Under the pieces are notes generated by a model, which ran no database searches, was not told the origin of the DNA, and saw only the letters and a program-made list of their open reading frames with translations. The position numbers and the translations under genes are program-made. Positions 1-64,000 of a stretch of DNA of 64,000 bases are shown piece after piece. The DNA lies in NCBI RefSeq assembly GCF_964204645.1, contig NC_134032.1, positions 13,628,275-13,692,274 of the forward strand. Direction: 5' to 3'. This DNA comes from Tubulanus polymorphus. Its lineage: Eukaryota; Animalia; Nemertea. The first letter of the stretch is position 1. Every line of letters starts with the position of its first letter.

Positions 1-399
1 GTTGATGATTCAACTCAAAGCGTTTCTATTATTTAATTGAAATCAAAAGTGGCAGTCAAAAAACGGACAATTAAATAATCGATCAAACAAAACTTTTGAA
101 AATTTGATTTACTTACTTGGAACAAGTGCAATAGATATTGAATGAATGGTCTGTTTGTGATGAGATGGTAACAGGAGATACGCCCATATTTAATATCTCT
201 GAAGAATAAAAAAGTAAATGAAAAACTCATTTCAAAATGTGTGATTGATAATTTCTTAAAAACAAAATCGAGTTTCAGTCTGAATACATACCACATATAT
301 TTCTATCATAATCAACGATTGACTGAAAGTGTCAAGGGCTGCTGCTGTTGAGGCTGTTCATTACATGGTGAATCAACCTCTCACATGGTATTGGACTGA

Positions 400-1210
400 C
401 TCACTGGAGGTAGATTCTGCAGCACTTTCAAGTCAAGTTCACCAGACAGTGTCTCACTGGGGATAGATTCTGAGCACTTTGAAGTCAATTTCACCAGACT
501 GTGTCTCACTGGGGATAGATTCGGCAGCACTTTTAAGTCAATTTCACCCGACAGTTTCCCACTGAGGGTAGATTATGCAGTACTTTGAAGTCAAGTTCAC
601 AACACAGTGTCTCACTGGGGATGGATTCTGCAGCACTTTGAAGTCAATTTCACCAGACAGTTTCCCACTGAGGGTAGATTCTGCAGTACTTTGAAGTCAA
701 GTTCACCACACAGTGTCTCACTGGGGATGGATTCTGCAGCTCTTTGAAGTCAATTTCACCAGACTGTGTCTCACTGAGGATAAATTCTGCAGTACCTTGA
801 TGTCAAATTCACCAGACAGTGTCTCACTTGGGGTAGATTCTGCAGCACTTTGAAGTCAAGTTCACCAGGCAGTTTCTCACTGGGGGTAGATTCTGCAGCA
901 CTTTCAAGTCAAGTTCATCAGGCAGTGTCTCACTGGGGATAGATTCTGCAGCACAATGAAGTCAAGTTCACCAGCCAGTGTCTCACTGGTGATAGATTCT
1001 GCATTTCTTTGAAGTCAATTTAACCAGACAGTCTCTCACTGGGGATAGATTCAACAGCACTTTGAAGTCAAGTTCACCAATGTCTCAGTTGGGATATATT
1101 TTGCAGTACTTTGAAGTCAAGTTCACCACACAGTGTCTCACTGGGGAGAGATTCTGCAGCACTTTGAAGTCAAGTTCACCAGATAATGTCTCACTAGGGG
1201 TAGATTTCTG
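400..1210. repeat. 53-bp minisatellite, ~15 copies
   Basis: Unit TAGATTCTGCAGCACTTTGAAGTCAAGTTCACCAGACAGTGTCTCACTGGGGA; starts at 411, 464, 516, 569, 622 and onward. Confidence 0.95.
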
Positions 1211-1215
1211 ACAGA

Positions 1216-2820
1216 CGTTGGGAGGGACAGTCAAGGGTTTGATTAACGGATGTCGGGAGGTACAGTTGAGGGTTTGATGAACGGATATCGGGAGGGACAG
1301 TCGAGGGTTTGATGTACTGATGTCGGGAGGTACAGTCGAGGGTTTGATTAACGGATGTCGGGAGGTACAGTGGATGGTTTGATGTATGGATGTCAGGAGG
1401 TACAGTCGAGGGTTTGAACGGGTTTCGAGAGGTTGTCATGGGTTTGATGTACGGATGTCGGGAGGTGCAGTCGAGGGTTTGATGTACAGATGCCGGGAGG
1501 TACAGTCGAGGGTTTGGTGAACAGATGTCGGGAGGTACAGTCGAGGGTTTGGTGAACGGATGTCGGGAGGTATAGTCAAGGGTTTGATGTACTGAGGTCG
1601 GGAGGTACAGTCGAGGGTTTGAACGGGTTTCGAGAGGTTGTCATGGGTTTGATGTACGTATGTCGGGAGGTACAGTCGAGTGTTTGATGAACGGATGTCG
1701 GGAGGTACTGTCGAGGGTTTGATGTACGGATGTCGGGAGGAAGTCGGGGGTTTGATGAACGGATGTCAGGAGGTAGAGTCGGGGGTTTGATGAACGGATG
1801 TCGGGAGGTACAGTCGAGGGTTTGGTGCACTGATGTCGGGAGGTACAGTCGAGGGTTTAATGTATGGATGTCAGGATGTACAGTCGAGGGTTTAATGTAT
1901 GGATGTCGGGATGTACAGTCGAGAGTTTGATGTACTGATGTCGGGAGGTACAGTCGAGGGTTTGATGAACGGATGTCGGGAGGTGCAGTCGAGGGTTTGA
2001 TGTACGGATGTCGCGAGGCGCAGTCGAGGGTTTGATGAACAGATGTCGGGAGGTACAGTCGAGGGTTTGATGTACTGATGTCGGGAGGTTCAGTCGAGGG
2101 TTTGACGTAAGGATGTCGGGAGGTACAGTCGAGGGTTTGACGTAGGGATGTCGGAGGTTCAGTCGAGGGTTTGATGAAGGGATGTCGGAGGCACAGTCGG
2201 GGGTTTGAACGGGTTTCGAGAGGTACAGTCGAGGGTTTGATGTACTGATGTCGGGAGGTACAGTCGAGGGTTTGATGAACGGATGTCGGGAGGTGCAGTC
2301 GAGGGTTTGATGTACGGATGTCGCGAGGCGCAGTCGAGGGTTTGATGAACAGATGTCGGGAGGTACAGTCGAGGGTTTGATGTACTGATGTCGGGAGGTT
2401 CAGTCGAGGGTTTGACGTAAGGATGTCGGGAGGTACAGTCGAGGGTTTGACGTAGGGATGTCGGAGGTTCAGTCGAGGGTTTGATGAAGGGATGTCGGAG
2501 GCACAGTCGGGGGTTTGAACGGGTTTCGAGAGGTACAGTCGAGGGTTTGATGTACAGAGGTCGGGAGGTAAAGTCGAGGGTTTGATGTACGGATGTCAGG
2601 AGGTGCAGTCAAGGGTTTGATGTACTGATGTCGGGAGGTACAGTCGAGGGTTTGATGTATGGATGTCGGGAGGTACAGTCGAGGGTTTGATGTATGGATG
2701 TCGGGAGGTACAGTCGAGGGTTTGATGTATGGATGTCGGGAGGTTCAGTCGAGGGTTTGATGTACGGATGTCGGGAGGTACAGGCGAGGGTTTGAATGGG
2801 TTTCGAGAGGTTGTCATGGG
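1216..2820. repeat. 35-bp G-rich minisatellite, ~46 copies, with an internal 310-bp duplication
   Basis: Unit GATGTCGGGAGGTACAGTCGAGGGTTTGATGTACG (1249, 1284, ...). The variant block at 1981 recurs at 2291. Confidence 0.95.
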
Positions 2821-2867
2821 TGAATCGCTGTAGTAGGGTATTAAAGAGTTCAGGGTAATGATTACAC

Positions 2868-3155
2868 AAGCCTATTGTCCACAATTCTATCAATTACAGC
2901 CACCTTTCAAGTGCAAGGTTTTAGAAGATTCGTTAGGTGGAAGAATTAGTATTTAAGTGGGAGATTTTGATAGATTAAGAGTTAGGTTGAAGAAGGAATA
3001 TTTATACGTGCTATAAGTTGAGAAGAGTTTGTCAAAAGGTGGCTGTAACTGATAGGATTGAAGACACCTGGCAGTAGAATGGAGATTGAAATAAGGTAAA
3101 ATGAGATGCCTGGGCTGGGGAGAGAGAAGGGATAGTTTTTGAGTTATGGGAAGAC
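2868..3155. repeat. Conserved core of G-rich cassette, copy 1
   Basis: agcctattgtcc..tttcaagtgcaag..tttatacgtgctataagttgagaagagtttgtc..ggcagtagaat is shared with 25331-25610 and 29849-30130. Confidence 0.9.
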
Positions 3156-3885
3156 AGTTGAAGTCAAGGTGGGAATATGGGATGTCAAGGGGCGTGGTAC
3201 AGGTTGAAGTCGAGGTGGGATGAGGGGATGTCGAGGGGCGTGGTACAGGTTGAAGTCAATGTGGGATGAGGGGATGTCGAGGGGCGTGGTACAGGTTGAA
3301 GTCAATGTGGGATGAGGGGATGTTGAGGGGTGTCGTACAGGTTTAAAGGAGGGGATATCAAGGGGCTTGGGATAGGTTGAAGTCAAGGTGGGATGAGGGG
3401 ATGTCGAGGGGTGTGGTACAGGTTGAAGTCGAGGTGGGGGGGGGATGTCGAGGGGTGTGGTACAGGTTGAAGTCGAGGTGGGATGAGGGGATGTCGAGGG
3501 GCGTGGTACAGGTTGAAGTCAATGTGGGATGAGGGGATGTTGAGGGGTGTCGTACAGGTTTAAAGAAGGGGATATCAAGGGGCTTGGTATAGGTTGAAGT
3601 CAAGGTCGGATGAGGGGATGTCGAGGGGTGTGGTACAGGTTGAAGTCAAGGTGGGATGAGGGGATGTCGAGGGGCGTGGTACAGGTTGAAGTCAAGGTGG
3701 AGGGATGTCGAGGGGTGTGGTACAGGTTGAAGTCGAGGTGGGGGGGATGTCGAGGGGTGTGGTACAGGTTGAAGTCAAGGTGGGGGATGTCGAGGGGTGT
3801 GGTACAGGTTGAAGTCGAGGTGGGGGATGTCGAGGGGTGTGGTACAGAAGTCAAAGAGAGGGGTTGCAGGGGGTTGAAGTGAGAA
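3156..3885. repeat. 46-bp G-rich minisatellite, ~16 copies
   Basis: Unit GATGTCGAGGGGCGTGGTACAGGTTGAAGTCGAGGTGGGATGAGGG (3181, 3227, ...); units shorten toward the right end. Confidence 0.93.
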
Positions 3886-6165
3886 CTGGTGTTTGCAGCG
3901 CACTTGACTAATTTCATGGTTTCACAGCACTTGGGATGTCAGGTTCGCCAGACAGTGCCTCAATGGAGCAGTTCTGCGGCACTTGGAATCCATGTCACAT
4001 TTGTGGAACTTAATTGTGATGACAGTTTCATTTCTGCTCTATTGGTTTTCAGAGCTCTCCGTAAATGATTCCACAACAGGTGTTTCTAAAATCAATACAA
4101 ACATACATGCCTTAAGAACGTTGCTATTTTTCTTCATCTTGAAATAGGGGATTGGCCTTGTTATTCATTGATTTGTTTTGATTCAGTGTCCCTTACAAGC
4201 GCCAGAATGGGGTTAACGTTGTTGGTTGCCTAGTTTAACAAGTTGAAATATTCGAAATAACCGTAACTATATTAAGGTAGCCAAATAACGACATCATTGA
4301 TAATGGATGAGACCAAAATTTGAAAATATGTTTTACTTACTGGGAATCTTTTGTTGAATAATTGGTCAGTTCGTGAAAAGATGGCGAGTTCACCAGACAG
4401 TGTCTTACTATGGGGTAGATTCTGCAGAACTTGAATCCATCTCATCTCAAATGGTACTGAACTGTAAATGAAATACAAGATTCATTATGAACATACTTAG
4501 AAACAATAGGAAAGATCTTAAATTTCCAATTTTACACAGTTCTTCTCACATTCTGTAGCACTTAGGATGCCTCCAGTTCACCAGACCATATCTCATTGGG
4601 GGTAGATTCTACAATACCCGGTACTTCGATCGGATGGTGGTGTTGCACCTTTCATCTGAGGGAAACCAAAAAATCCTGCAGTATTTGGAACTCAAGTTCA
4701 CTGGACAGTGTCTCACTGGGGATAGATTCTGCAGTACTTGCAAATCATTTTTCATGGCGCTGATCTAAAGTAGAATTAAGAATTAGAAATTGATATACAT
4801 TTTCAAACATGGAAACCAATAGTTAGATTTCCAAATTTACACGTTTCTCCTCACATTCTGTAACACTCCGATGCTGAGGTCACCAGTCTCTCATTGGAGG
4901 TGGATGGAGTCTACAATAGTTGCATATCAAGTTGATCAGGGTCTCACCAGTGACAGATTCTGCAGCACTCTTGAATTCAATAGTGGAATTTGTGAATTAA
5001 TCAACACCAAGCATTTCTAAATCAGTACAAAATTGTATAAAAGGCGAGTATTTGCCAAAGAGGAAGCCAAAAATGGGAATAATTGATAATGGATGATATC
5101 AAACTTTGAAAACTAGTTTTACTTACTCAGACTTAATGTCGAATGAATGAGTCTGTTTGTGAAGAGAACATATTGCACCATTTATCTGAAGGAAAACAAA
5201 AAATAGATGAAAAACTCATCACTAAAGATAATTGATGATTTCTTGATTTCGGTGTGTATACATACCACTAGTATTTCTATCATAATCTGTAAGTTTCAAG
5301 GGCTGCTGCTGTTCCTGCTGCTGCTGCTCAAGTCGTCCTATCTAAATGATGTTCTTTATAGACTTGTTCATTACATAGAGGATCAACCTTTAAAATAGTA
5401 TTGAACTGAAAATAAAATAAAAGATACTTCATTCATTTTCAAACATAGAAACCATATAGGGAGGATTACCAATATGACATGATTCTACTCACATTCTTCA
5501 GCATTTGGGCGTCAAGATTACCAGACAGTGTCTCAATGGGGATGGATTATGCACGAGTACTTGAAATCCATCTCACGTGGGAATGAACTGAAAATCAAAT
5601 GAAAGATTCATTTTGAATATTTTTTCACAAAGACAGAAAAAAATGGAGGGTTTTCAAATTCCAATTTTACATATTTCTTCTGACATTCTGCAACACTTGG
5701 ATGCTGAGTTCACCAGGCTTTCACTGAGGGAAAATTCTAAAACACTTGGGTATCGAGTTAATCAGGCAGATTCTGCAGCACTTGAATCCTTTTGTGGAGT
5801 TTGTGATTGATCCAACTTTGAATAGATGGCAAGAAAAGATATTTCGCCTTTCATCTGAAAGAAGGCCCAGAGAACATCCGAATTAGTCAATAAGGACAGC
5901 CAAACAACAGGCATTACTGATGATGGATTAAATCAAATTTTGAAAACATGTGTAACTTACTTGGAATATAATGTCGAATGAATAGTCCATTTGTGAAGAG
6001 AGGATTAGAGAACAAATAGCATCTTTCAACTGAAGAAAAACAACAAATTTATAAATGCACTTCAAAGAATGACTGGTGTGACTTCTTAAAAGAAAATCGA
6101 TTTTCGGTTTGGATACAAACCACTTATATTTTTATCGTAATCAACAATGGACAGTAAGTGACGGG

Positions 6166-12565: not shown

Positions 12566-14345
12566 ATTAATACAAAACTATATAGGCATGAAGAACGTAT
12601 CTAAAAGCCGATAGTAGCAGCTAAAAACGGGCATTATTAATAATGGACGATACCAAACTTTGAAAATAAGTTTTACTTACTACAAATCAACTGCGATCAA
12701 GTGTCTAATTTAGTGTTTGTGGAGAGGATGGTAAGAGAACATACGGCTCATATTTCTTTCATCTTAAGAAAAATAGAAAATGATTGGAAATGTATTTCAA
12801 AAGATGATTATTATATTATATGAAATGAAATTGAATTTCGGTCTGAACACGTACCACTTATGTTTCTATTGTAATCAACGATGGACTGTAAGTGTCAAGG
12901 GCTGCTACAGTTCAGATCACTTTGATCAAAATGAAAATCCTTATAGACCCGTGCATTACATAGATGTTCCAACCTTTTACATGGTATTGAACTGAAAATA
13001 AAATAAAAGATTCTTCACAAATCCATTTTCAAACATAGAAACCAATAGGGAGCTTTTCCAATTTTGCAGAATTCTACTCACATTCTACAGCACTTGGACG
13101 TCAAGTTTACCGGACAGTGTCTCACTGGGGATAGATTCTGCAGTACTCGCAAATCATTTTTCATGACACTGAACTAGATTAGAATAAATAATTCATCAGG
13201 AATAATTCATTTTCACACATCGAAAACAACAGTGAGGATTCCCAAATTCACACATTTCTTATTACATTCTTTGGCACTTCGATGCCGAGTTTACCAGTAT
13301 CTATCTTGCATATCAAACTGATCAGCGTCTCACCAGTGACAGATTCTGCAGCACTCTGAATCCAATTGTGGAATTTGTAAATGATTCTACACCAGGTGTT
13401 TCTAAAACAGTACAAAATTGTTTAGAAGTTTTAACCAACAGTGCCAGCCACAAAAAAGCGGGCATAATTAATAACGGATATCAAACTTTGAACATTTCTT
13501 TTACTTACTCGGAATCAATGTCAAATGAATGGATCTGTTTGTGAAGAGAACATATTGCATCATTCTATCTGAAGAAAAACAAAAGATAGATGAAAAATTC
13601 ATTTCTACAGATAATAGATGATTTCTTAATTTCAGTCTGAATACAAACCACTAATATTTCTATCGTAATCAAACAATGTTCTGTAAGTTTGAAGGGCTGC
13701 TGCTGCTACTGCTGCTGCTGCTACTGTTGGTGCTGCTCAAGTCAGATCAAAATGATGTTCTTTATGGACTTGTTCATTACATAGAGGATTGACCTTTTAC
13801 ACAGTATTGAACTGAAAATAGAATGAGATTTTCCATTACCGGTATTCATTTTCAAACATAGAAACCGATTAGGGAGGATTTCCAATATGACATGATTCTA
13901 TACTCACATTCTACAGCACTCGGACGTCAAGTTCACGGGACAGTGCACTTGACTAATTTCACAGTTTCGCACTTGGGATGTCAGGTTTGCCAGACAGTGC
14001 CTCAATGGAGCAGTTCTGCGGCACTTGGAATCCATGTCACATTTTGTGGAACTTTATTATGATGACAATTTCATTTTTTGCTTTATCAGTTTTCAGAGCT
14101 TTCCGTAAATAATTCCACACCAGGCGTTTCTAAAATCAATACAAACATACATTTATACATGTAAAAGCCGTAGGCATTTTTCTTCATCTTCAAATACGGG
14201 ATTGGCCCTGTTATTTATTTAATTGGTAGATTTCATTTGATTTGTTTTGATTGAGTGTCCCTTACAAGCGCCAGATTGGGGTTTACGTTGTTGGTTACTT
14301 AGTTGAAAACATTGAAATTTTCTTAATATCCGTAACTATACTAAG

Positions 14346-15205
14346 CAGAGATGCTAGGGCCAAAGTACCAAAATTCCGGAATTTAGAACGGGGGCCTGGG
14401 GATCCTCCCCCAGAAAAAATTTTGCGTTTTTGCATCGCCGGAGATGCAGTATCACGATCGGCATCTTTCATCTGAAAATATGACGGCAGGCATTCGTTGT
14501 GCTTCACACCCCTCACTGCTTATGCCGCGCGCTATCCGGATGACGAAGAATATCTTTTTTCCCGCCACTACCGTATTTGACCTGGTCTTTACGAACGACG
14601 CAGTACGCCACGCCAGCTAAGTCTATCTTACGAATGTAGTTCGGTAAGTAGTCCCCGTTACTGTCCTTACACTCTAGCCAGTGCCAGTTAAATTTATTTT
14701 TTATACCGCTGTCAATTGCCTTTATATCGGCCGACTCCCGACTGACAATCTTTCCGTGCGTGCTCATTTTGCAGACCGTCCCGCTTGACAGCGGCAGGCA
14801 AAAAGAAAGTTACAAAGCTGCGTGCCTCAGGACATAGCACGCGCGTGGTTATAATTAAGATGATATTTATTAAATATCATCTTAATTAATACCACGTGCA
14901 TCTTCACATTGTTGGCCGTCAGCGGGACGATGTACAACGGCGCATTAAGATAATTGACTTTTAATTGGAAATGGCGTCACAACGTGGCGCTCCGCCTACG
15001 CACGCGCACAGATACCACAACAAGCACACATATATACATTGTATCAGAACGTCCTCGGAAACGGAGACCAAGATAAAATAACACAGAAGCGACGATGAGT
15101 ACAAGCAAACGAACGCTATTACGGTCCGTGCCATTACTGGTCGCCGCGAGGAATTCTCACCAAATTTCCGGAATTCCAGATATTTCCGGAAAACTAGCAT
15201 CTCTG
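14346..15205 (-). mobile_element. Non-autonomous hAT-like DNA transposon, copy 3
   Basis: Same TIRs and flanks; 860 bp. Confidence 0.85.
14423..14767 (-). pseudogene. Transposase zinc-finger fragment, copy 3 (second Cys lost)
   Basis: ORF 14513-14767 reads CVVRK instead of CVVCK. Confidence 0.75.
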
Positions 15206-42001: not shown

Positions 42002-42043
<42 letters not shown>

Positions 42044-48000: not shown

Positions 48001-51000
48001 AATTTAGAAACTGATAGGTACGGGTTTTCAATAATTACACTTTTACTCACATTCTGCAGCACTAAAATACCAAGTTCACCACAGATTGTCTCAGTAGGGG
48101 TCGATTCTGTAGGAGATTCTGTATCCATCTTACTAACATGGTACTGAACATAGAATAAGAGAGTCTTTACGAATTCAATTTCAAACATAGAGACTTATGG
48201 GGTGGATTTCAAATTCTTTGCATTTCTACTCACATTTTGTAGCACTTGGATGCAATTCAGCGAGTCAGCGAGTTGCAAGTCGATCAGCATCTCACCAGTG
48301 ACAGATTCTGCAGCACTCTTGAATCCAATTGTGGAATTTGTGAATGATTCTACACCAGGGGTTTCTGAATCAGTACAAAATTGCATAAAAGGTGAATATT
48401 TGCAAAAAAGGGAAGCCAAAAATGGGAATAAATGGTAATGGCTGATATCAAAATATGCTTTACTTTATCGGCATCAACGTTGAAGGAATGTTCTGTTTGT
48501 GAAGAGATGTTGAGAGAAGATATTTCAGCATCTAAAAACATGTAATAGATGGAAAACTCATTTCTAAAGATAATTGATGAATTCTTTAAAAGAAAATTGA
48601 ATTTCGGTCAGCATACATACCACATTTCGATAGTAATCAATGAGGAACTCTAAGTGTCAGGGGCTTCTGCTGCTGCTCAGACTTGATCTGAATAATGTTC
48701 TTTATGGACTTGTTCATTATTTAGAGGATCAACCTTTTACATCACGTTGAACTGAAAATAAAATAAATCATATTTCATTAATTCATTTTCAAACATAGAA
48801 ACCAATAGGAAGATATTCAAATTTCACTCTTTTCTACTCACATTCTGCAGCACTTGGATGTTAAGTTTACCAGAAAGTGTTTCATTAGGGGTAAATTCTG
48901 CAGCACTTGAAATCCATCTCTTATCGGAATGAACTGAAAATATAATGAACGATTCATCACAAATATATTTTCACACCTAGAAAACAAATGTGGTCCAAGA
49001 TTACACATTTCTTCTCACATTCCGAAGCACTTCAATGCTGAGTTCATCAGTCTCTCACTGAGAGTTGATTCCACAACACTTGCATATCAAGTAGATCAGA
49101 CAGCGTCTCACCAGTGACAGATTCTGCAGCATCCCGAATCCAAATGTGGAATTGTGAATGATTCCACACCAGGCATTTCTAAATCAGTACAAAATTATAT
49201 AGAAGGTGAGTACTAGCTAAAAGTGGTGGCCAAAAGCGGGCATAATTAATGATGGATATCAAACTTATATGATTTACTTGGAATCAATGTCACATGAATG
49301 ATCTGTTTGTGAATAGATGATGATATTGCACCACATCTGAAAGAAACAAAAAAATGAAAAATGCACTTCAATAGATGATTAATGATTTCTTTAAAAGAAA
49401 ATTGATTTCGGTCTGAATACAAACCACATTTCTATCGTAATCAACAATGGACTGTAAGAGTCGGGGGCTGCTGCTGCTGCTCAGGCCAGGTCAAAATGAC
49501 GTTCTTTATGGACTTGTTCATTACGAAGAGAGGATCAACCTTTTACATGATGTTGAACTGAAAATAAAACGAATCATTTTTCATTAATTTTCAAGCATAG
49601 AAACCAATAGGAAGATATTCCAGTTTCACACTTTTCTACTCACATTCTACAGAACTTGGATATCAAGTTACCAAAAAGTGTTTCACTTGGGGTAAATTCT
49701 GTAGCACTTGGAATCCATCTCTTATCGGAATGAACTGTAAACATAATGATAGATTCATTTTTCACACCTTGTAAACTAAAGGGTGGATTCTGAATTTCCA
49801 TTTAAAAATTTCTTCTCACATTCTGTAGTACTTAGATGCTGAGTTCACCTGACAAAGTCTCCCTGACGGTTGTTTCTACAATACTTGGATATGAAAGTTG
49901 CTAAGACAGCTTCTCACCAGTGACAGATTCTGCAGCACTCTGAATCCAATTGTGGAATTTGTAAATGATTCCACACCAGGCATTTCTAAATAAGTACAAA
50001 ATTATATAGAAGATGAGTATTAAATGTGGTGGCCAAAAGCGGGCATAATTGATAATGGGTATCAAATTCATATATGATTTACTTGCAATCAATGTCACAT
50101 GAATGATTTGTTTGCGAATAGATGATGATATTGCACCTCATCTGAAAGAAACAAATAGATGGAAAATACACACTTCAATCAGATGATTAATAATTTCTTT
50201 AAAATGAAATTGAATTTCGGTCTGAACACAAACCAGTTATATTTCTATCACAATCAACGATGCACTGTAAGTGTCGAGGGCTGCTGCTGTTGAGGTCCCA
50301 TTGATCAAAATAAAAATTTCTGTTGACTTGAGAGAATCAACCTCTTCCATGGTACTGAACATCTGAAAGTAAAAGAAAAGATTCTCAATAAATACATTTT
50401 CAAATTTAGAAACTGATAGGTACGGGTTTTCAATAATTACACTTCTACTCACATACTGCAGCACTAAAATACCAAGTTCACCACATATGGTCTCAGTAGG
50501 GGTCGATTCTGTAGGAGATTCTGTATCCATCTTACTAACATGGTACTGAACATAGAATAAGAGAGTCTTCACGAATTCAATTTCAAACATAGAAACCAAT
50601 GGGGTGGATTTCAAATTCTTTGCATTTCTACTCATATTCTGCAGCACTTGGATACAATGCATACCGGACAGAGTCTCACTTGGAGGTTGATTCTGCAGCA
50701 CTTGGAATCCATTTCATACGGCAATGAACTGAAAATAAAATGAAAGATTGATTTTTGAATATATTTTCAAACTTAGAAAACAAAAGGGGAATTCATATTT
50801 CCTAATTACACTTTTCTCCTCACATTCTGTGGCACTTGCATGCTGAGTTCATCAGACAGTCTCACTGAGGGTCGAGTCTACAATAGTTGCATATCAAGTT
50901 GATCAGACAGCGTCTCACCAGTGACAGTTTCTGCAGCAATTTGAATCCAATTGTGGAATTTGTGAACGATTCTACACCAGGCGTTTCTAAATCAGTACAA

Positions 51001-54000
51001 AATTATATAAAAAGTGAGTATTATCCAAAAGTGAAAGCCAAAAATGGGAATAATTGGTAAATGGCTGATATCAAACTTCGATAATATGTTTTACTCACTC
51101 AGAATCAATGTCAAATAAATGTTCTGTTTGTGACAAAATGTTGAGAGAAGAGACTCAGCATCTAAAAACATAAAATAGATGAAAAACTCATTTCTAAAGA
51201 TGATTGATCATTTTGGTCTGAGTACATACCACTTATAATTTCGATTGTAATCAATTATATGAACTGTAAGTGCTGCTGCTGCTGCTCCTCAGGCCATATC
51301 AAAATGATGTTCTGTATGGACTAACTTGTTCATTACTTAGAGAATCAGCCTTTTACATGGTATTGAACTGAAAATAGAATAAAACATTCCCAATTAATTC
51401 ATTTTCAAACATAGAATCCAATAGGGAGGATTTCCAATTCAGCACAATTTCTACTCACATTCTGCAGCACTTGGATATCAAGTTTACCAGAAAGTGTTTC
51501 ACTAGGGGTAAATTCTGTAGCACTTGGAATTCAACTCACATAGGAATGAACTGTAAATATAATGAAAGATTAATTTTTCACACCTTGTAAACCAAATGGT
51601 GGATTCTAAATTTCCATTTAAGAATTTCTTCTCACATTCTGTAGTACTTAGATGCTGAGTTCACCAGACAAAGTCTCCCTGACGGTTGTTTCTACAATAC
51701 TTTGATATGAAAGTTGCTAAGACAGCTTCTCACCAGTGACAGATTCTGCAGCACTACGAATCCAGTAGTGGAATTTGTAAATGATTCCACACCAGGCATT
51801 TCTAAATCAGTACAAAATTATATAGAAGATGAGTATTAGCTTAAAAGTGTATGAAAATGGATGAAAAATACACTTCAAAGGATGATTAATAATTTCTTTA
51901 AAATGAAAGTGAATTTCGGTCTGAATACAAACCAGTTATATTTCTATCACAATCAACAATGCACTGTAAGTGTCAAGGGCTGCTGCTGTTGAGGTTCCAT
52001 TGATCAAAATATAAATCTCTGTTGACTTAAGAGAATCAGCATCTTTCATGGAACTGAAAATCTGAAAATAAAAGAAAAGATTCTCGATAAATACATTTTC
52101 AAATTTAGAAAAAAATTGGGATTTTCCAATAATTACACTTCTACTCACATACTGCAGCACTAAAATACCAAGTTCACCACACATTGTCTCAGTAGGGGTC
52201 GATTCTGTAGGAGATTCTGTATCCATCTTACAAACATGGTACTGAACATAGAATAAGAGAGTCTTCACGAATTCAATTTCTAACATGGAAACTTATGGGG
52301 TGGATTTCAAATTCTTTGCATTTCTACTCACATTTTGTAGCACTTGGATGCAATTCAGCGAGTCAGCGAGTTGCAAGTAGATCCACGTCTCACCAGTGAC
52401 AGATTCTGCAGCACTCTTGAATCCAATTGTGGAATTTGTGAATGATTCTACACCAGGGGTTTCTGAATCAGTACAAAATTGCATAAAAGGTGAATATTTG
52501 CAAAAAAGGGAAGCCAAAAATGGGAATAAATGGTAATGGCTGATATCAAAATATGCTTTACTTTATCGGCATCAACGCTGAAGGAATGTTCTGTTTGTGA
52601 AGAGATGTTGAGAGAAGATATTTCAGCATCTAAAAACATGTAATAGATGGAAAACTCATTTCTAAAGATAATTGATGAATTCTTTAAAAGAAAATTGAAT
52701 TTCGGTCAGCATACATACCACATTTCGATTGTAATCAATGATGAACTGTAAATGTCAGGGGCTTCTGCTGCTGCTGCTCAGACTTGATCAAAATAATGTT
52801 CTTTAAGGACTTGTTCATTACTTAGAGGATCAACCTTTTACATCAAGTTGAACTGAAAATAAAATAAATCATTTTTCATTAATTCATTTTCAAACATAGA
52901 AACCAATAGGAAGATATTCAAATTTCACTCTTTTCTACTCACATTCTGCAGCACTTGGATGTTAAGTTTACCAGAAAGTGTTTCACAAAGGGTAAATTCT
53001 GCAGCACTTGAAATCCATCTCTTATCGGAATGAACTGAAAATATAATGATAGATTCATCACAAATATATTTTCACACCTAGAAAACAAATGTGGTCCAAG
53101 ATTACACATTTCTTCTCACATTGCGAAGCACTTCAATGCCGAGTTCATCAGTCTCTCACTGAGAGTTGATTCCACAACACTTGCATATCAAGTTGATCAG
53201 ACAGCGTCTCACCAGTGACAGATTCTGCAGCATCCCGAATCCAAATGTGGAATTGTGAATGATTCCACACCAGGCATTTCTAAATCAGTACAAAATTATA
53301 TAGAAGGTGAGTATTAGCTAAAAGTGGCGGCCAAAAGCGGGCATAATTAATGATGGATATCAAACTTATATGATTTACTTGGAATCAATGTCACATAAAT
53401 GATCTGTTTGTGAATAGATGATGATATCGCACCACATCTGAAAGAAACAAATAAATGAAAAATACACTTCAACACATGATTAATGATTTCTTTTAAAACA
53501 AAATTGATTTCGGTCTGAATACAAACCACATTTCTATCGTAATCAACAATAGACAGTAAGAGTCGGGGGCTGCTGCTGCTGCTCAGGCCAGGTCAAAATG
53601 ACGTTCTTTATGGACTTGTTCATTACGAAGAGAGGATCAACCTTTTACATGATGTTGAACTGAAAATAAAATGAATCATTTTTAATTAATTTTCAAGCAT
53701 AGAAACCAATAGGAAGATATTCCAGTTTTACACTTTTCTACTCACATTCTACAGCACTTGGATATCAAGTTTACCAGAAAGTGTTTCACTAGGGGTAAAT
53801 TCTGTAGCACTTGGAATCCATCTCTTATCGGAATGAACTGTAAATATAATGAAAGATTCATTTTTCACACCTTGTAAACTAAAGGGTGGATTCTGAATTT
53901 CCATTTAAAAATTTCTTCTCACATTCTGTAGTACTTAGATGCTGAGTTCACCAGACAAAGTCTCCCTGACGGTTGTTTCTACAATACTTTGATATGAAAG

Positions 54001-57000
54001 TTGCTAAGACAGCTTCTCACCAGTGACAGATTCTGCAGCACTCTGAATCCAATTGTGGAATTTGTAAATGATTCTACACCAGGCATTTCTAAATAAGTAC
54101 AAAATTATATAGAAGATGAGTATTAAATGTGGTGGCCAAAAGCGGGCATAATTGATAATGGGTATCAAATTCATATATGATTTACTTGCAATCAATGTCG
54201 CATGAATGATCTGTTTGTGAATAGATGATGATATTGCAACTCATCTGAAAGAAACAAATAGATGGAAAATACACACTTCAATCAGATGATTAATAATTTC
54301 TTTAAAATGGAATTGAATTTCGGTCTGAACACAAACCAGTTATATTTCTATCACAATCAACAATGGACTGTAAGTGTCAAGGGCTGCTGCTGTTGAGGTC
54401 CCATTGATCAAAATAAAAATTTCTGTTGACTTGAGAGAATAAACCTCTTTCATGGTACTGTAAAAGAAAAGATTCTCAATAAATACATTTTCAAATTTAG
54501 AAACTGATAGGTACGGGTTTTCAATAATTACACTTTTACTCACATTCTGCAGCACTAAAATACCAAGTTCACCACATATTGTCTCAGTAGGGGTCGATTC
54601 TGTAGGAGATTCTGTATCCATCTTACATGGTACTGAACATAGAATAAGAGAGTTTTCACGAATTCAATTTCAAACATAGAAACCAATGGGGTGGATTTCA
54701 AATTCTTTGCATTTCTACTCACATTCTGCAGCACTTGGATACAATGCATACCGGACAGAGTCTCACTTGGGGGTTGATTCCGCAGCACTTGGAATCCATT
54801 TCACACGGCATTGACAACTGAAAATAAAATGACAGATTCATTTTGAATATATTTTCAAACTTAGAAAACAAAAAGAATTTTTAATTTCCAATTTTACACA
54901 TTTCTCCTCGCATTCTGTGGCACTTCCATGCTGAGTTCCTCAGACAGTCTCACTGAGGGTCGAGTCTACAATACTTGCATATTGTTGATCAGTCAGCAAG
55001 TTGCAAGTTGATCAGCTTCTCACCAGTGACAGATTGTGCAGCACTCTGAATCCAATTGTGGAATTTGTGAACAATTCTACACCAGACATTTCTAAATCAG
55101 AACAAAATTGTATAAAAGGTGAATATTTGCAAAAAAGGAAGCCAAAAATGGGAATAATTGGTAATGGCTGATATCAAGCTGATATCAAACTTTGAAAATA
55201 TACTTTACTTTATCGGTATCAATGTTGAAGGAATGTTCTGTTTGTGAAGAGATGTTGAGAGAAGATATTTCAGCACCTAAAAACATAAAATAGATGAAAA
55301 ACTCATTTCTAAAGATGATATGACTTCCTTAAAAGAAAATTGAATTTTGGTCTGAATATACATACCACTTATATTTTGATTGTTATCAACGATGATTAGT
55401 TTCGGGGGGCTGCTGCTGCTAGACTAGATCAAAATGATGTTCTTTATGGACTTGTTCATTACATAGAGGATCGACCTTTAACATGACGTTGAACTGGAAA
55501 TAGAATAAAACATTCTCCATTTATTCATATTCAAACATAGAAACCAATAGGGAGGATTCCAATGTCACACTATTCTACTAACATTCTACAGCACTTGAAC
55601 GTCAAGTTTACCAGAAAGTGTTTCACTAAGGGTAAATTCTGCAGCACTTGGAATCCAACTCTCATGGGAACAAACTGAAAACATAATGAAAGATTCATCA
55701 CAAATATATTTTCACTCCTAGAAAACAAAATGGGGTCCAAGATTACACATTTCTTCTCACATACTGTAGCACACCGATGCCGAGTTCACCAGTCTCTAAC
55801 TGATGGTAGATTCTACAACTCTCGGATATCAAGTTGATCAGACAGCGTCTTACCAGCAACAGATTCTGCAGCACTTTGAATCCAATTGTGGAATTTGTGA
55901 ACGATTCTACACCAGTCGTTTCTAAATAAGTACAGAATTATATAGGAGATGAGTATTATCCTAAAGTGGCAGCCAAACGAAGCATAATTGATAATGGATA
56001 TCAAACTCATATATGATTTACTTGCAATCAATGTGGCATGAATGATCTGTTTGTGAATAGATGATGATATTGCACCTCATCTGAAAGAAACAAATAGATG
56101 AAAAATACACACTTCAAAAGATGATTAATAATTTCTTAAAGATGAAATTGAATTTCGGTCTGAATACAAACCAGTTATATTTCTATCATAATCAACGATT
56201 GACTGTTAAGCATCAAGGGCTGCTGCTGTTGAGGTCCCATTGATCAAAATAAAAATTTCTGTTGACTTGAGAGAATCAACCTCTTTCATGGTACTGAACT
56301 GAAAATAAAAGAAAAGATTCTCAAAAAATACATTTTCAAATTTAGAAACTGATAGGTATGGGTTTTCAATTCTACTCACATACTGCAGTACTAAAATACC
56401 AAGTTCACCACAGATTGTCTCAGTATGGGGTCGATTCTGTAGGTGATTCTGTATCCATCTTACTAACATGGTACTGAACATAGAATAAGAGAGTCTTCAC
56501 GAATTCTATTTCAAACATAGAAACTTATGGGGTGGATTTCAAATTCTTTGCATTTCTACTCACATTCTGCAGCACTTGGATACAATGCATACCGGACAGA
56601 GTCTCACTTGGGGGTTGATTCTGCAGCACTTGGAATACATTTCACACGGCAATGAACTGAAAAATAAAATGGAAGATTGATTTTTGAATATATTTTCAAA
56701 CTTAGAAAACAAAAAGGAGAATTTTTGATTTCCAATTTTACACATTTCTCCTCACATTCTGTGGCACTTCCATGCCGAGTTCCTCAGACAGTCTCACTGA
56801 GGGTCGAGTCTACAATACTTGCATATTGTTGATCAGTCAGCGAGTTGCAAGTTGATCAGCTTCTCACCAGTGACAGATTCTGCAGCACTCTGAATCCAAT
56901 TGTGGAATTTGTGAACAATTCTACACCAAACATTTCTAAATCAGAACAAAATTGTATAAAAGGCGAGTATTTGCAAAAAAGGGGAAGCCAAAAATGGGAA

Positions 57001-60000
57001 TGATTGGTAAATGGCTGATATCAAAATATGCTTTACTTTATCAGAATCAATGTTGAAGGAATGATCTGTTTGTGAAGAGATGTTGAGAGAAGATATTTCA
57101 GCATCTAAAAACATAAAATAGATGAAAAACTCATTTCTAAAGATGATATGACTTCCTTAAAAGAAAATTGAATTTTGGTCTGAATATACATACTACTTAT
57201 ATTTTGATTGTTATCAACGATGATTAGTTTCAGGGGCTGCTGCTGCTAGACTAGATCAAAATGATGTTCTTTATGGACTTGTTCATTACATAGAGGATCG
57301 ACCTTTAACATGACGTTGAACTGGAAATAGAATAAAACATTCTCCATTAATTCATTTTCAAACATAGAAACCAATAGGGAGGATTCCAATGTTACACTAT
57401 TCTACTAACATTCTACAGCACTTGAACGTCAAGTTTACCAGAAAGTGTTTCACTAAGGGTAAATTCTGCAGCACTTGGAATCCAACTCTCATGGGAACAA
57501 ACTGAAAATATAATGAAAGATTCATCACAAATATATTTTCACTCCTAGAAAACAAAATGGGGTCCAAGATTACACATTTCTTCTCACATACTGTAGCACA
57601 CCGATGCCGAGTTCACCAGTCTCTAACTGATGGTAGATTCTACAACTCTCGGATATCAAGTTGATCAGACAGCGTCTTACCAGCAACAGATTCTGCAGCA
57701 CTTTGAATCCAATTGTGGAATTTGTGAACGATTCTACACCAGTCGTTTCTAAATAAGTACAGAATTATATAGAAGATGAGTATTATCCTAAAGTGGCAGC
57801 CAAACGAAGCATAATTGATAATGGATATCAAACTCATATATGATTTACTTGGAATCAATGTCGCATGAATGGTCTGTTTGCAAATAGATGATGATATTGC
57901 ACCTCATCTGAAAGAAACAAATGGATGAAAAATACACTTCAAAAGATGATTAATAATTTCTTTAAAATGAAATTGAATTTCGGTCTGAATACAAACCACA
58001 TATATTTCTATCACAATCAACGATGAACTGTAAGTGTCGAGGGCTGTTGCTGTTGAGGTCCCATTGATCAAAATAAAAATTTCTGTTGACTTGAGAGAAT
58101 AAACCTCTTTCATGGTACTGTAAAAGAAAAGATTCTCAATAAATACATTTTCAAATTTAGAAACTGATAGGTACGGGTTTTCAATAATTACACTTTTACT
58201 CACATTCTGCAGCACTAAAATACCAAGTTCACCACAGATTGTCTCAGTAGGGGTCGATTCTGTAGGAGATTCTGTATCCATCTTACTAACATGGTACTGA
58301 ACATAGAATAAGAGAGTCTTTACGAATTCAATTTCAAACATAGAAACTTATGGGGTGGATTTCAAATTCTTTGCATTTCTACTCACATTTTGTAGCACTT
58401 GGATGCAATTCAGCGAGTCAGCGAGTTGCAAGTAGATCAGCATCTCACCAGTGACAGATTCTGCAGCACTCTTGAATCCAATTGTGGAATTTGTGAATGA
58501 TTCTACACCAGGGGTTTCTGAATCAGTACAAAATTGCATAAAAGGTGAATATTTGCAAAAAAGGGAAGCCAAAAATGGGAATAAATGGTAATGGCTGATA
58601 TCAAAATATGCTTTACTTTATCGGCATCAACGTTGAAGGAATGTTCTGTTTGTGAAGAGATGTTGAGAGAAGATATTTCAGCATCTAAAAACATGTAATA
58701 GATGGAAAACTCATTTCTAAAGATAATTGATGAATTCTTTAAAAGAAAATTGAATTTCGGTCAGCATACATACCACATTTCGATTGTAATCAATGAGGAA
58801 CTGTAAGTGTCAGGGGCTTCTGCTGCTGCTCAGACTTGATCTGAATAATGTTCTTTATGGACTTGTTCATTACTTAGAGGATCAACCTTTTACATCACGT
58901 TGAACTGAAAATAAAATAAATCATATTTCATTAATTCATTTTCAAACATAGAAACCAATAGGAAGATATTCAAATTTCACTCTTTTCTACTCACATTCTG
59001 CAGCACTTGGATGTTAAGTTTACCAGAAAGTGTTTCACTAGGGGTAAATTCTGCAGCACTTGAAATCCATCTCTTATCGGAATGAACTGAAAATATAATG
59101 AACGATTCATCACAAATATATTTTCACACCTAGAAAACAAATGTGGTCCAAGATTACACATTTCTTCTCACATTCCGAAGCACTTCAATGCTGAGTTCAT
59201 CAGTCTCTCACTGAGAGTTGATTCCACAACACTTGCATATCAAGTAGATCAGACAGCGTCTCACCAGTGACAGATTCTGCAGCATCCCGAATCCAAATGT
59301 GGAATTGTGAATGATTCCACACCAGGCATTTCTAAATCAGTACAAAATTATATAGAAGGTGAGTACTAGCTAAAAGTGGTGGCCAAAAGCGGGCATAATT
59401 AATGATGGATATCAAACTTATATGATTTACTTGGAATCAATGTCACATGAATGATCTGTTTGTGAATAGATGATGATATTGCACCACATCTGAAAGAAAC
59501 AAAAAAATGAAAAATGCACTTCAATAGATGATTAATGATTTCTTTAAAAGAAAATTGATTTCGGTCTGAATACAAACCACATTTCTATCGTAATCAACAA
59601 TGGACTGTAAGAGTCGGGGGCTGCTGCTGCTGCTCAGGCCAGGTCAAAATGACGTTCTTTATGGACTTGTTCATTACGAAGAGAGGATCAACCTTTTACA
59701 TGATGTTGAACTGAAAATAAAACGAATCATTTTTCATTAATTTTCAAGCATAGAAACCAATAGGAAGATATTCCAGTTTCACACTTTTCTACTCACATTC
59801 TACAGAACTTGGATATCAAGTTACCAAAAAGTGTTTCACTAGGGGTAAATTCTGTAGCACTTGGAATCCATCTCTTATCGGAATGAACTGTAAACATAAT
59901 GATAGATTCATTTTTCACACCTTGTAAACTAAAGGGTGGATTCTAAATTTCCATTTAAAAATTTCTTCTCACATTCTGTAGTACTTAGATGCTGAGTTCA

Positions 60001-62000
60001 CCTGACAAAGTCTCCCTGACGGTTGTTTCTACAATACTTGGATATGAAAGTTGCTAAGACAGCTTCTCACCAGTGACAGATTCTACAGCACTCTGAATCC
60101 AATTGTGGAATTTGTAAATGATTCCACACCAGGCATTTCTAAATAAGTACAAAATTATATAGAAGATGAGTATTAAATGTGGTGGCCAAAAGCGGGCATA
60201 ATTGATAATGGGTATCAAATTCATATATGATTTACTTGCAATCAATGTCACATGAATGATTTGTTTGCGAATAGATGATGATATTGCACCTCATCTGAAA
60301 GAAACAAATAGATGAAAAATACACACTTCAATCAGATGATTAATAATTTCTTTAAAATGGAATTGAATTTCGGTCTGAACACAAACCATTTATATTTCTA
60401 TCACAATCAACGATGCACTGTAAGTGTCGAGGGCTGCTGCTGTTGAGGTCCCATTGATCAAAATAAAAATTTCTGTTGACTTGAGAGAATCAACCTCTTC
60501 CATGGTACTGAACATCTGAAAGTAAAAGAAAAGATTCTCAATAAATACATTTTCAAATTTAGAAACTGATAGGTACGGGTTTTCAATAATTACACTTCTA
60601 CTCACATACTGCAGCACTAAAATACCAAGTTCACCACATATTGTCTCAGTAGGGGTCGATTCTGTAGGTGATTCTGTATCCATCTTACTAACATGGTACT
60701 GAACATAGAATAAGAGAGTCTTTACGAATTTATTTTCAAACAAAGAAACCAATAGGATGGATTTCGAATTTATTGCAATTCTACTCACATTCTGCAGTAC
60801 ATGGATGCAATGCATACCAGAAATAGTCTTGGGGGTTGATTCCGCAGCACTTGGAATCCATTTCACACGGCATTGACAACTGAAAATAAAATCAAAGATT
60901 CATTTTGCATTTATTCTCAAACTTAGAAAACAAAAGGGAGAATTTTCAAATTACACGTTTCTCCTCACATTCTGTGGCATTTTGTCACATGAATAATCTG
61001 TTTGTGAATAGATGATGATATCGCACCTCATCTGAAAGAAACAAATAAATGAAAAATACACACTTCAATCAGATGATTAATAATTTCTGTTAAAACAAAA
61101 TTGATTTCGGTCTGAATACAAACCACATTTCTATGGTAATCAACAATGGACAGTAAGAGTCGGGGGCTGCTGCTGCTGCTCAGGCCAGGTCAAAATGACG
61201 TTCTTTATGGACTTGTTCATTACGAAGAGAGGATCAACCTTTTACATGATGTTGAACTGAAAATAAAACGAATCATTTTTCATTAATTTTCAAGCATAGA
61301 AACCAATAGGAAGATATTCCAGTTTCACACTTTTCTACTCACATTCTACAGCACTTGGATATCAAGTTTACCAGAAAGTGGTTCACTAGGGGTAAAATTC
61401 TGTAGCACTTGGAATCCATCTCTTATCGGAATGAACTGTAAATATAATGAAAGATTCATTTTTCACACCTTGTAAACTAAAGAGTGGATTCTGAATTTTC
61501 ATTTAAAAATTTCTTCTCACATTCTGTAGTACTTAGATGCTGAGTTCACCAGTCAAAGTCTCCCCGACGGTTGTTTCTACAATACTTTGATATGAAAGTT
61601 GCTAAGACAGCTTCTCACCAGTGACAGATCCTGCAGCACTCTGAATCCAATTGTGGAATTTGTAAATGATTCCACACCAGGCACTTCTAAATAAGTACAA
61701 AATTATATAGAAGATGAGTATAAGCTAATTGTGGCAGCCAAAAGCGGGCATATTTTATAATGGGTATCAAATTCATATATGATTTACTTGGATTCAATGT
61801 CGCATGAATGATCTGTTTGTGAATAGATGATGATATTGCACCTCATCTGAAAGAAACAAATGGATGAAAAATACACTTCAAAAGATGATTAATAATTTCG
61901 TTAAAATGAAATTGAATTTCTGTCTGAATACAAACCACTTATATTTCTATCATAATCAACAATGGACTGTAAGTGTCAAAGGCTGCTGCCGCTTAGGTTC
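32400..62000. repeat. Higher-order repeat domain, ~10.2-10.8 kb period with nested 1.83-kb and ~4.1-kb duplications
   Basis: Near-identical ORF-track entries at constant offsets: 34881/45660/55813, 35274/46053/56206 and 36708/47487/57640 (10779 and 10153 bp); 34881/36708 (1827 bp); 48195/52293 (4098 bp). Confidence 0.92.
42004..42062. repeat. (CTG)n/(CAG)n microsatellite, ~19 triplets
   Basis: 13 CTG, one CGG, 5 CTG. Confidence 0.95.
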
Positions 62001-62612
62001 CATTGATCAAAATAAATTGCGAGAATCACCCTCTTTCAAGGTACTGAACTGAAAATCTGAAAATTAATGGAAGATTCTTAATAAATACATTTTAAAATTC
62101 AGAAACCGACGAGAAGGATTTTCCAATATCACACTTCTACTCACATTCTGCAGTACTAAAATACCAAGTTCACCACACATTGTCTCAGTAGGGGTCGATT
62201 CTGTAGGAGGTTCTGTATTAATCTTACATGGTTCTGAAAATGGAATAAGAGAGTCACTTAGAATTTCTTGCAATTCAACTCACATTCTGCAACACATTGG
62301 ATGTAATGCATACCAGACAGTCTCACTTGGGTAGATTCTGCAGCACTTGAAATCTATTTCACATGGCAATGAACTGCAAATATAATGAAAGATTCATCAC
62401 AATGATATTCTCACATCTAGAAAACAAAAGTGGGTCCAAGATTACATTTTTTCTCCCATACCGTAGCACTCCGATGCTGGGTTCACCAATCTCCAACTGA
62501 TGGTAGATTCTCTTGCATATCAAGTTGATCGTACAGCATCTCACCAGTAACAGATTCTGCAGCATTCAGAATCCAATTGTTGAATTTGTGAACGATTCTA
62601 CACCAGGCGTTT

Positions 62613-63910
62613 CTAAATCAGTACAAAATTGTATAAAAGGTGAGTATTATCCAAAAGTGGAAGCCAAAAATGGGAATAATTGGTAAATGGCTGATATCAA
62701 ACTTTGATAATATGTTTTACTCACTCAGAATCATTGTCAAATGAATGTCCGGTTTGTGACAAGATGTTGAGAGAAAAGATTTCAGCATCTAAAAACATAA
62801 AATAGATTAAAAAAACTCCTTTCTAAAAAGATGATTGATAATTTTGGTGTGAATAAATACCACTTATGATTTCGTTTGTAATCAGCAATGGACTGTAAGT
62901 GTCAGGGCTGCTGAAGCTGCTGCAAGCTAAATCAAAATGATGTTCTTCATGGACTTGTTCATCGCATAAAGGATCGATCTTTTACATGGTTTTGAACTTA
63001 AAATAAGATAAAACATTCTCTTTTCAAGTCATTTTGAAGCATAGAAACAAATAGGTTAGATTTCCAATTTGACACTTTTCTACTCACATTCTGCAGCGCT
63101 TGGACGTCAAGTTTACCAGACAGTGTTTCACTAGGGGTTGGATTCTGCAGCACTTGGAATTCATCTCTTATGGGAATGAACTGAAAATATAATGAAAGAT
63201 TCATCGTGAATACATTTTCACACCTAGAAAACAAAATGGAGTATTTCAATTTCCAATTTTACACATTTTTTCTCACATTCTGCAGCACTTTGATGCTGAG
63301 TTCACCAATCTCTAACTGATGGTAGATTCCAAAATACTTGTATATCAACGTTGATCAGACAGCGTCTCACCAGTAACAGATTCTGCAGCACCCTGAATCC
63401 AATTGTGGAATTTGTGAATGATTCTACACCCGACATTTCTAAATCAGTACAAAATTATATAAAAAGTGAGTATTATCCAAAAGTGAAAGCCAAAAATGGG
63501 AATAATTGGTAAATGGCTGATATCAAACTTTGATAATATGTTTTACTCACTCAGAATCAATGTCAAATAAATGTTCTGTTTGTGACAAAATGTTGAGAGA
63601 AGAGACTCAGCATCTAAAAACATAAAATAGATGAAAAACTCATTTCTAAAGATGATTGATCATTTTGGTCTGAGTACATACCACTTATAATTTCGATTGT
63701 AATCAATTATATGAACTGTAAGTGCTTCTGCTGCTGCTGCTCAGGCCATATCAAAATGATGTTCTGTATGGACTTACTTGTTCATTACTTATAGAATCAG
63801 CCTTTTACATGGTATTGAACTGAAAATAGAATAAAACATTCCCAATTAATTCATTTTCAAACATAGAATCCAATAGGGAGGATTTCCAATTTAGCACAAT
63901 TTCTACTCAC
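62613..63910 (-). other. Worked example: eight consecutive predicted-exon boundaries giving seven canonical GT-AG introns
   Basis: Introns: 63820-63910 (GTGAGT..TTTTCAG, 91 nt), 63614-63681 (GTATGT..TTTTTAG, 68), 63439-63550 (GTGAGT..GATTTAG, 112), 63181-63276 (GTGAGA..TTTTCAG, 96), 62997-63087 (GTGAGT..TTTTAAG, 91), 62789-62860 (GTATTT..TTTTTAG, 72), 62613-62724 (GTGAGT..GATTTAG, 112). Exons between them: 138, 63, 162, 93, 136 and 64 nt. Confidence 0.75.
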
Positions 63911-64000
63911 ACTCTGCAGCACTTGGATATCAAGGTTACCAGAAAGTGTTTCACTAGGGGTAAATTCTGTAGCACTTGGAATTCAACTCTCATAGGAATG

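Follow-up and report, generated by a model that had tools for sequence, protein, structure and literature searches.

Does the tandem array that fills the window (the whole stretch of DNA analysed, 64 kb) belong to a spliced gene, and which of its properties is under selection? The initial annotation had proposed a non-coding transcript in which splicing rather than coding is maintained. Selection on splicing is borne out by the behaviour of GT and AG and by the absence of a codon-phase signal, whereas the transcript itself is one that we infer from sequence patterns. With a probability of roughly 0.55, the array is, or is part of, a giant spliced repeat long non-coding RNA (lncRNA) gene whose selected property is splicing itself.

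Profile HMMs without any GT or AG requirement identified 247 full-length short introns (~50-120 nt) on the minus strand of the window, in alternation with exons of 59-180 nt. These were 136 A-B/B-C, 61 C-D, and 50 D-A introns. Together with about nine further introns, long or chimeric, identified by eye, they give a total of ~250 exons in the window; the many-exon array originally described therefore stands, but its estimate of about 200 exons was too low. The A-B and B-C introns form one homologous family, which brings the intron types down from four to three, and the three families are unrelated in sequence. The array is arranged head-to-tail without inverted blocks and continues past both ends of the window (Table 1). 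The example module first annotated at 62613-63910 proved exact. Four donor/acceptor pairs per unit in strict alternation, as initially described, is the commonest form (31 of 60 units), but the other 29 differ, with five introns in nine units and fused or deleted variants in 20, and a few orphan splice sites occur, for example near 23000, 21680, and 7260. Regular exons and introns cover 75% of the window; minisatellite and transposon-like spacers make up the remainder. The GC content is 40% in exons and 28% in introns, and the median identity among copies is only 67-77%. No promoter or transcript end was seen within the window, apart from two AATAAA candidates at 30245 and 25724; the promoter would probably lie past the high-coordinate end. 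These are possible 3' ends, and the two AATAAA-plus-spacer breaks may divide the array into several transcription units. Assembly artefact or collapse was rejected as a source of the array: contigs of two samples contain the sequence, and depth scales with the copy number in the window.

Table 1. Positions of the array, its example modules, and associated elements in the window.
Feature	Position	Strand	Remarks
Exon-intron module array, head-to-tail	1..64000	-	HMM map, coordinates, no inverted blocks
Main regular block of 0.78-1.03 kb modules	30270..64000	-	Higher-order duplications of 1.2-6.2 kb, 93-98% identity
Example, first intron, 91 nt	63910-63820	-	Followed by exon C 138, intron 68 (63681-63614), exon D 63, intron 112 (63550-63439)
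Example exon A, 162 nt (family median 161)	63277..63438	-	53-nt motif at its end
Example A-B intron, 96 nt	63181..63276	-	GTGAGA..TTTCAG
Example exon B, 93 nt (median 92)	63088..63180	-	~1.5 copies of 53-nt motif
Example B-C intron, 91 nt	62997..63087	-	A-B intron family
Example exon C, 136 nt (median 131)	62861..62996	-	Variable CAG run
Example C-D intron, 72 nt (family 68-118 nt)	62789..62860	-	GT and AG intact in 61/61 copies
Example exon D, 64 nt (median 60)	62725..62788	-	
Example D-A intron, 112 nt	62613..62724	-	AG intact in 50/50 copies
Replacement donor GTATGG	62456..62461	-	4 nt upstream of lost GT
53-nt exonic motif run, 15 copies	400..1206	-	
53-nt motif run, ~10 copies	20879..21419	-	Donor directly at its end
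53-nt motif run, 9 copies	25749..26237	-	Then AATAAA at 25724-25719
53-nt motif run, 7 copies	30269..30651	-	Then AATAAA at 30245-30240
Spacer interrupting the array	1220..3890	.	35-nt and 46-nt minisatellites around 32-nt inverted repeat
Spacer with 32-nt minisatellite	24941..25745	.	Paralogue at ~29430-30265; this copy with 103-bp iGluR-like insertion
Fourth intron type, 86 nt, GTATGT..TTCAG	24828..24913	-	After spacer; twin at 29424-29338
MITE-like element, terminal inverted repeats	14339..15212	.	Within long D-A intron 15320-14130; four copies in 2.7-kb repeat zone

Both splice dinucleotides were present, at the aligned site or beside it, in 240 of the 247 introns (216 at the aligned columns; 24 with a site shifted by a few nucleotides). 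Two of the remaining introns have GC donors and five lack one site; the donor is missing outright from three recent copies (50635, 44772, and 18600) and the acceptor from two. Splice signals are strongly strand-biased, both for the acceptor-like TTTTYAG (112 vs 8) and for a donor followed by an acceptor 60-120 nt further on (261 vs 49).

The initial annotation had held that GT and AG mutating at the background rate, together with no spliced minus-strand reads in any tissue, would speak for a dead satellite; the rate proved to be lower than background. Across modules, the GT/AG columns underwent 19 parsimony changes where same-base columns predict 61 (p<1e-5), which is about three times less change than in matched columns. 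Taken singly, the three families of introns are all significantly depleted (p=0.006, 7e-5, and 0.002). In neutral simulations with the same trees and the same aligner, as few GT/AG changes were obtained in 0/60, 0/80, and 0/80 cases. Non-splice GT and AG in the same alignments changed at the background rate (median 1.04 vs 0-0.56 for splice sites; p=0.0004). Variation at the sites obeys splice rules: G is kept at +5, and only C, T, or A occur at -3. Intron interiors drift as fast as exons.

The donor of the D-A intron is shifted by 4 nt in a lineage of 11 copies, and donor turnover of the kind seen at 62456..62461 recurs at 43034 and 32085; a further shifted donor lies at 58616. Among 14 copies with a spare upstream GT, three had lost the old GT and gained a G at -1 of the new site, as against 6 of 99 copies without a spare GT (Fisher p=0.08), which is suggestive of turnover to the spare site. 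The age of the branches also matters. Splice-site changes numbered 6 on old branches, where 33 were expected, and 6 on recent branches, pooled, where 12.9 were expected (p=0.035). In the youngest copies (at least 90% alike), the A-B/B-C donor changed at the neutral rate: the four splice positions of this family had 6 changes against an expectation of 6.4, and each of the 6 fell in the donor. No recent change was found at C-D sites, D-A sites, or A-B acceptors, although ~6.5 were expected for C-D and D-A sites alone. Splice-site constraint is thus weaker among the youngest copies than on old branches.

Conservation of splice sites could be a relic of a former coding role, the array being the remnant of a protein-coding repeat gene. 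An open frame runs through consensus exons B and D and through most of consensus exon C, and genomic ORFs of 100-158 aa are present. Against this stand exon lengths that occupy all three phases, also when old lineages are compared, exon indels of which 70 of 88 are not multiples of 3, and the lack of any codon-phase bias or third-position excess in the exons. Stops occur in all three frames in 54 of 58 C exons, and the longest stop-free stretch of the joined spliced model is 161 codons, vs 126 in shuffles of its 26 kb. Searches with genomic ORFs gave no match in Pfam and, for the one ORF tested, no relative among 1.84 billion proteins. Coding ancestry was rejected on these grounds; the remnant reading is largely refuted and hardly credible, and the frameshifting indels and stops noted initially are confirmed. 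Since GT and AG are depleted of change and the exons lack coding constraint, purifying selection has acted on splicing, not on coding. Equally implausible is a neutral satellite of the amphioxus 'mirage' type (PMC3087553), in which duplicated boundaries are unused and the sites are kept by the youth of the copies or favoured by the aligner. The copies are too divergent for this and retain whole introns with both of their ends, and when neutral evolution was simulated and passed through the same aligner, only 27/113, 16/52, and 16/43 GT/AG pairs stayed intact in the three families, vs 97, 52, and 34 observed. The constraint tests refute this reading, barring a mutational shelter specific to splice dinucleotides. 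A selfish or DNA-level persistence, without benefit to the host, would have spliceable arrays escape repeat silencing and amplify, or conserved blocks bind protein on DNA. The conserved block around the A-B donor (~-5 to +8) does extend past GT. No direct evidence, however, ties splicing to amplification, and the six site contexts have only the splice consensus in common, which argues against a DNA-binding motif; we regard this explanation as very improbable.

Splicing may instead serve to free intronic small RNAs, in the manner of SNHG14, Bsr, C19MC, or mirtrons, or to feed piRNA or siRNA production. The repeated-exon layout resembles that of such hosts, and some copies fold. One of them, the A-B intron copy 53841-53913, has z -2.1 in the sense orientation, and scores 24.5 with the mir-1175 model on the opposite strand (cut-off 51). 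A hairpin in exon C (38606-38690, z -4.5), considered as an miRNA candidate, was dismissed as restricted to one sublineage; the family has a mean z of -0.3 and no consensus fold. A mirtron formed by pairing of the D-A donor with a downstream TACTCAC was likewise limited to a small sublineage, and the 53-nt motif, considered as a stem-loop, did not fold more stably than shuffled sequence (z +0.9 and +1.8). Against a small-RNA host, Rfam searches at gathering and E-value thresholds gave nothing real, the matches to CAG runs and mir-1175 being far under the cut-off. Box C/D or H/ACA snoRNAs were not recognised in the introns: 0/247 contain a C box with a D box after it, and there was no Rfam snoRNA match and no conserved fold. 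Intron folding had a mean z of 0 to -0.5, a consensus fold was absent or not clearly beyond shuffles, and covariation was not detected; the drift of intron interiors also counts against a cargo. The hairpin scan for conserved pre-miRNAs returned isolated copies and the MITE palindrome only. Tests for conserved motifs in exons yielded only weak signals (p=0.017 for exon D and p=0.09 for exon C, both uncorrected), and the 53-nt motif had no match in metagenome contigs. We regard a small-RNA host as improbable. A somewhat better case, though still an unlikely one, can be made for a once-functional spliced non-coding gene that is now silent, with constraint dating from the divergence of the module types and with recent duplications (1-10 kb) as neutral satellite turnover. 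The far stronger depletion on old than on recent branches and the recent losses of donors and acceptors agree with it, as does the sole RNA-labelled run, which contained no array sequence. That run, however, may be from a Pacific sister species, the zero count of recent changes at C-D sites, D-A sites, and A-B acceptors is unexpected in a silent array, and ongoing weak selection also predicts an excess of young, mildly harmful changes. In the three runs with array sequence, the contigs were DNA-like, running unspliced through introns with no CT..AC joint; contig joints in the reads link paralogous modules, and none corresponds to an intron, nor was any spliced read found.

For the preferred reading, a giant spliced repeat lncRNA, we infer transcription and present-day activity, as well as the number of transcription units (one or several) and the purpose of splicing. 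A very long non-coding transcript would be made by RNA polymerase II from the minus strand. Its ~250 mini-exons would stem from tandem duplication and unequal exchange of a small spliced unit that had three types of intron. Selection would since have purged mutations from the GT and AG dinucleotides at the ends of every intron, with the interiors of exons and introns drifting at similar rates. The selected property would be efficient co-transcriptional splicing, which may allow the polymerase to traverse 64-100 kb of AT-rich repeat and would remove the introns of 28% GC. The outcome may be chromatin marked in cis or a stable repeat RNA, of which this window's part would be ~26 kb. This explanation gives no reason why one lost site in 500 matters to a non-coding RNA. 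More tentatively, such 'spliced satellites' might form a class of living non-coding genes with hundreds of mini-exons and no protein or small-RNA cargo, present with unrelated sequences at many loci of the genome and kept only to be spliced, be it to mark chromatin, to seed nuclear bodies, or to escape silencing.

It is an open question whether selection maintains lncRNA splicing for the sake of the RNA made or of the splicing act (PMC4245815). With ~250 paralogous replicates at one locus, in which the splice sites and little else are conserved, this question becomes testable within a single genome. If the array is expressed, its transcript would rank in exon number with the most exon-rich genes known, without coding, and some satellite-masked sequence would be a gene. 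Within the searchable literature, we found no paper on this locus or on such arrays in spiralians.

In human lincRNAs, selection is centred on splice signals, with little in exon cores or folding (PMC4245815). The array shares this splice-centred constraint, and the 'process' model fits; ordinary lincRNAs, however, have a few unique exons, whereas the present signal comes from hundreds of paralogous modules at one invertebrate locus. Splice signals copied in tandem repeats are also known from the amphioxus mirages. These concern one boundary, in the cited cases in 3-6 units of 10-160 bp with 81-100% identity, and are unused decoys in coding genes (PMC3087553), in contrast to the whole introns, ordered four-exon modules, and sites under purifying selection found here. 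The SNHG14/SNORD115-116 host and rat Bsr (RBII-36) are likewise huge non-coding loci of tandem exons and introns. Their introns contain box C/D snoRNAs (PMC3413130), unlike the short array introns, which have no C..D pair, Rfam match, or conserved interior. The C19MC host gene is similar in its size (~100 kb), its repeated ~120-nt exon, and its lack of an ORF, but has 37 exon copies around miRNA-bearing, Alu-rich introns (PMC2691840), as opposed to ~250 exons of four types, minimal introns, and no conserved pre-miRNA in the array. The layout of SNHG14 and C19MC, to which the initial annotation had pointed, is thus matched, while their snoRNA or miRNA payload was searched for and not found; they are architectural look-alikes, not family. 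Repeat-rich architectural lncRNAs, such as hsr-omega, Xist, Firre, and Rsx, carry their repeats mostly within a few large exons. As a putative long non-coding RNA built of tandem motifs, with its 53-nt unit and CAG runs, the array resembles them, but differs in that its repeat is cut into ~250 spliced pieces.

Nearly end to end, the window is repetitive, and most of it is AT-rich (GC content 34–41%). The exon–intron example of the initial annotation at 62613-63910 matches the minus-strand reading at every base. Introns, named here for the exons A to D that they separate, were collected with profile HMMs seeded with one copy per intron plus 25 nt of flank; the searches were iterated and GT/AG was not demanded. 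Because the A-B and B-C seeds merged, three families were obtained in the window: A-B/B-C (136 full-length copies, median 90 nt), C-D (61 copies, 89 nt), and D-A (50 copies, 100 nt). The median exon lengths are 161 (A), 92 (B), 131 (C), and 60 nt (D). All modules lie on one strand. The proposed minus-strand array of exons is borne out, with about 250 exons in the window (HMM hits plus long and chimeric introns counted by eye) instead of some 200. The four-intron unit is the commonest form but not, as had been proposed, the universal one: it accounts for 31 of 60 units and measures 0.78–0.89 kb, two insertion-bearing units excepted. Nine of the 60 units have five introns, and the remainder are fused or deleted variants. 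Blocks of 1.2–6.2 kb were recently recopied (93–98% identity). Several exon–exon fusions are present. Many deletions appear to have removed donor and acceptor jointly, preserving the alternation; a few left orphan splice sites (about 23000, 21680, and 7260).

Contigs of three public sequencing runs from two samples span 58001-64000, and their depth is proportional to copy number within the window, at roughly 20–50 per copy. These two observations rule out an assembly artefact or a badly collapsed array; the array is a real feature. Some contig joints in this interval omit whole modules, e.g. 62853 to 63675, which points to additional paralogous copies or to module numbers varying between samples.

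Median pairwise identities of 67%, 72%, and 77% in the three families indicate that the intron copies have diverged enough for a test of constraint. GT and AG occupy the aligned columns in 216 of 247 introns; a usable site lies a few bases off in 24, two have a GC donor, and five lack one site. The test of GT/AG conservation suggested in the initial annotation gave the predicted outcome: in trees built for each family, the twelve splice positions show 19 changes versus 61 predicted by same-base columns (p<1e-5). The depletion is significant within every family separately. Since the aligner could draw stray AGs into register, neutral evolution of the consensus was simulated on these trees and the output passed through the identical alignment pipeline. 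Splice-site changes exceeded the observed number in all 220 simulations, and intact GT+AG pairs numbered 97, 52, and 34 versus neutral means of 27/113, 16/52, and 16/43. Outside the splice sites, GT and AG in these alignments evolve at the background rate; the depletion is therefore not a matter of dinucleotide mutability. The permitted variation obeys splice rules (+5 G retained, G absent at -3), and GC content is 40% in exons versus 28% in introns. Three copies that had acquired an extra GT four bases upstream have lost the original one and strengthened the new donor, a turnover that is suggestive only (p=0.08). Depletion is clearest on old branches (6 changes versus 33 expected). Recent branches carry 6 changes versus 12.9 expected (p=0.035); every one of them falls in the A-B/B-C donor, and C-D, D-A, and A-B acceptor sites did not change on these branches. 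This pattern is consistent with weak selection that still acts but takes effect with a lag; it may also reflect partial relaxation of constraint.

A coding array was ruled out. Exon lengths are distributed over all phases, stops interrupt every frame in 54 of 58 C exons, and 70 of 88 distinct exon indels have lengths not divisible by three. Exon substitutions show no codon phase, six genomic ORFs had no Pfam match, and an ORF spanning B, B, and C exons had no relative among 1.84 billion proteins. By script count only, the longest stop-free length in the joined spliced model is 161 codons versus 126 in shuffles.

The search for small-RNA cargo was also negative. Rfam gave no match at threshold, no intron of the array has a C box with a D box downstream, introns fold on average no better than shuffles, and consensus folds are weak with no covariation. 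Intron interiors and exons drift at about equal rates. Hairpins limited to single sublineages were treated as chance, and the mir-1175 candidate, far under its cut-off, was judged likewise.

The contigs of the three public runs pass through introns unbroken and contain no intron-type joint; accordingly, these runs behave as DNA. The sole RNA-labelled run (2015) has no match to the array. This blank is of little weight if run and genome differ in species, or if the RNA is confined to certain tissues or lacks a poly(A) tail. A public transcriptome named Tubulanus polymorphus was made from San Juan Island material (PMC4986456); animals of the Pacific belong to a distinct species, T. ruber (PMC8468679).

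Features located in the array and its spacers
Feature	Position	Strand	Remarks
Chimeric introns	51932-51802; 23986-23828	-	C-D donor, D-A acceptor
Imperfect 29-bp hairpin	38606-38690	-	z -4.5; CAG run in loop; one C-exon sublineage, not family-wide
Weak mir-1175 model match	53841-53913; 43863-43935; 32909-32981	+	24.5 bits, cut-off 51; antisense to A-B intron
103-bp insertion	24941-25043	-	missing from paralogous spacer at about 29440
MITE-like element, about 860 bp	14339-15212		copies near 9000-9880, 11700-12560, 17000-17900
Related spacer cores	1220-3890; 25085-25745; 29490-30265
Expanded exon C CAG runs	6166-6258; 42003-42062; 16333-16389		31, 20, and 19 repeats, respectively

The 103-bp insertion encodes 16 residues typical of the end of the iGluR/IR ligand-binding S1 region, followed by a GT donor; it is a captured gene fragment. 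The MITE-like element lies within a long D-A intron and has CAG-starting terminal inverted repeats, the terminal CAG resembling an acceptor, and an internal near-perfect 29-bp palindrome. Each spacer core adjoins a different G-rich minisatellite (35, 46, and 32 nt), and one contains a 32-nt inverted repeat (2876-2907/3035-3066). We presume that these cores resemble non-autonomous elements that seed satellites. The exon C CAG run has 3–6 repeats in most copies. The exonic 53-nt units each contain an internal donor-like CA/GTGAGA (e.g. 25887-25939, minus strand) and three TGA triplets, all in the same frame.

The locus is a one-strand exon–intron array that shows purifying selection at its splice sites and neither coding constraint nor recognisable cargo. 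Within the window, the putative transcript would yield some 26 kb of mature RNA, composed of 53-nt motifs and CAG runs, which could serve as a scaffold. Two runs of the 53-nt motif terminate at an AATAAA, beyond which lie a minisatellite spacer and a fourth intron type; the array may therefore comprise several units instead of one.

Our literature search found no account of this locus or of comparable arrays in spiralians. SNHG14 and rat Bsr release snoRNAs from repeated introns (PMC3413130), and C19MC releases miRNAs (PMC2691840). The array shares the repeated exon–intron layout of all three, and to this extent the initial analogy with SNHG14 and C19MC holds; the defining intronic cargo of these hosts was not found (Rfam, C/D boxes, and folding), and the array is not a member of their class. 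Nor does it belong with the 'mirage' minisatellite, which copies a single boundary, an unused decoy (PMC3087553). The putative transcript would work like a splice-constrained lncRNA.
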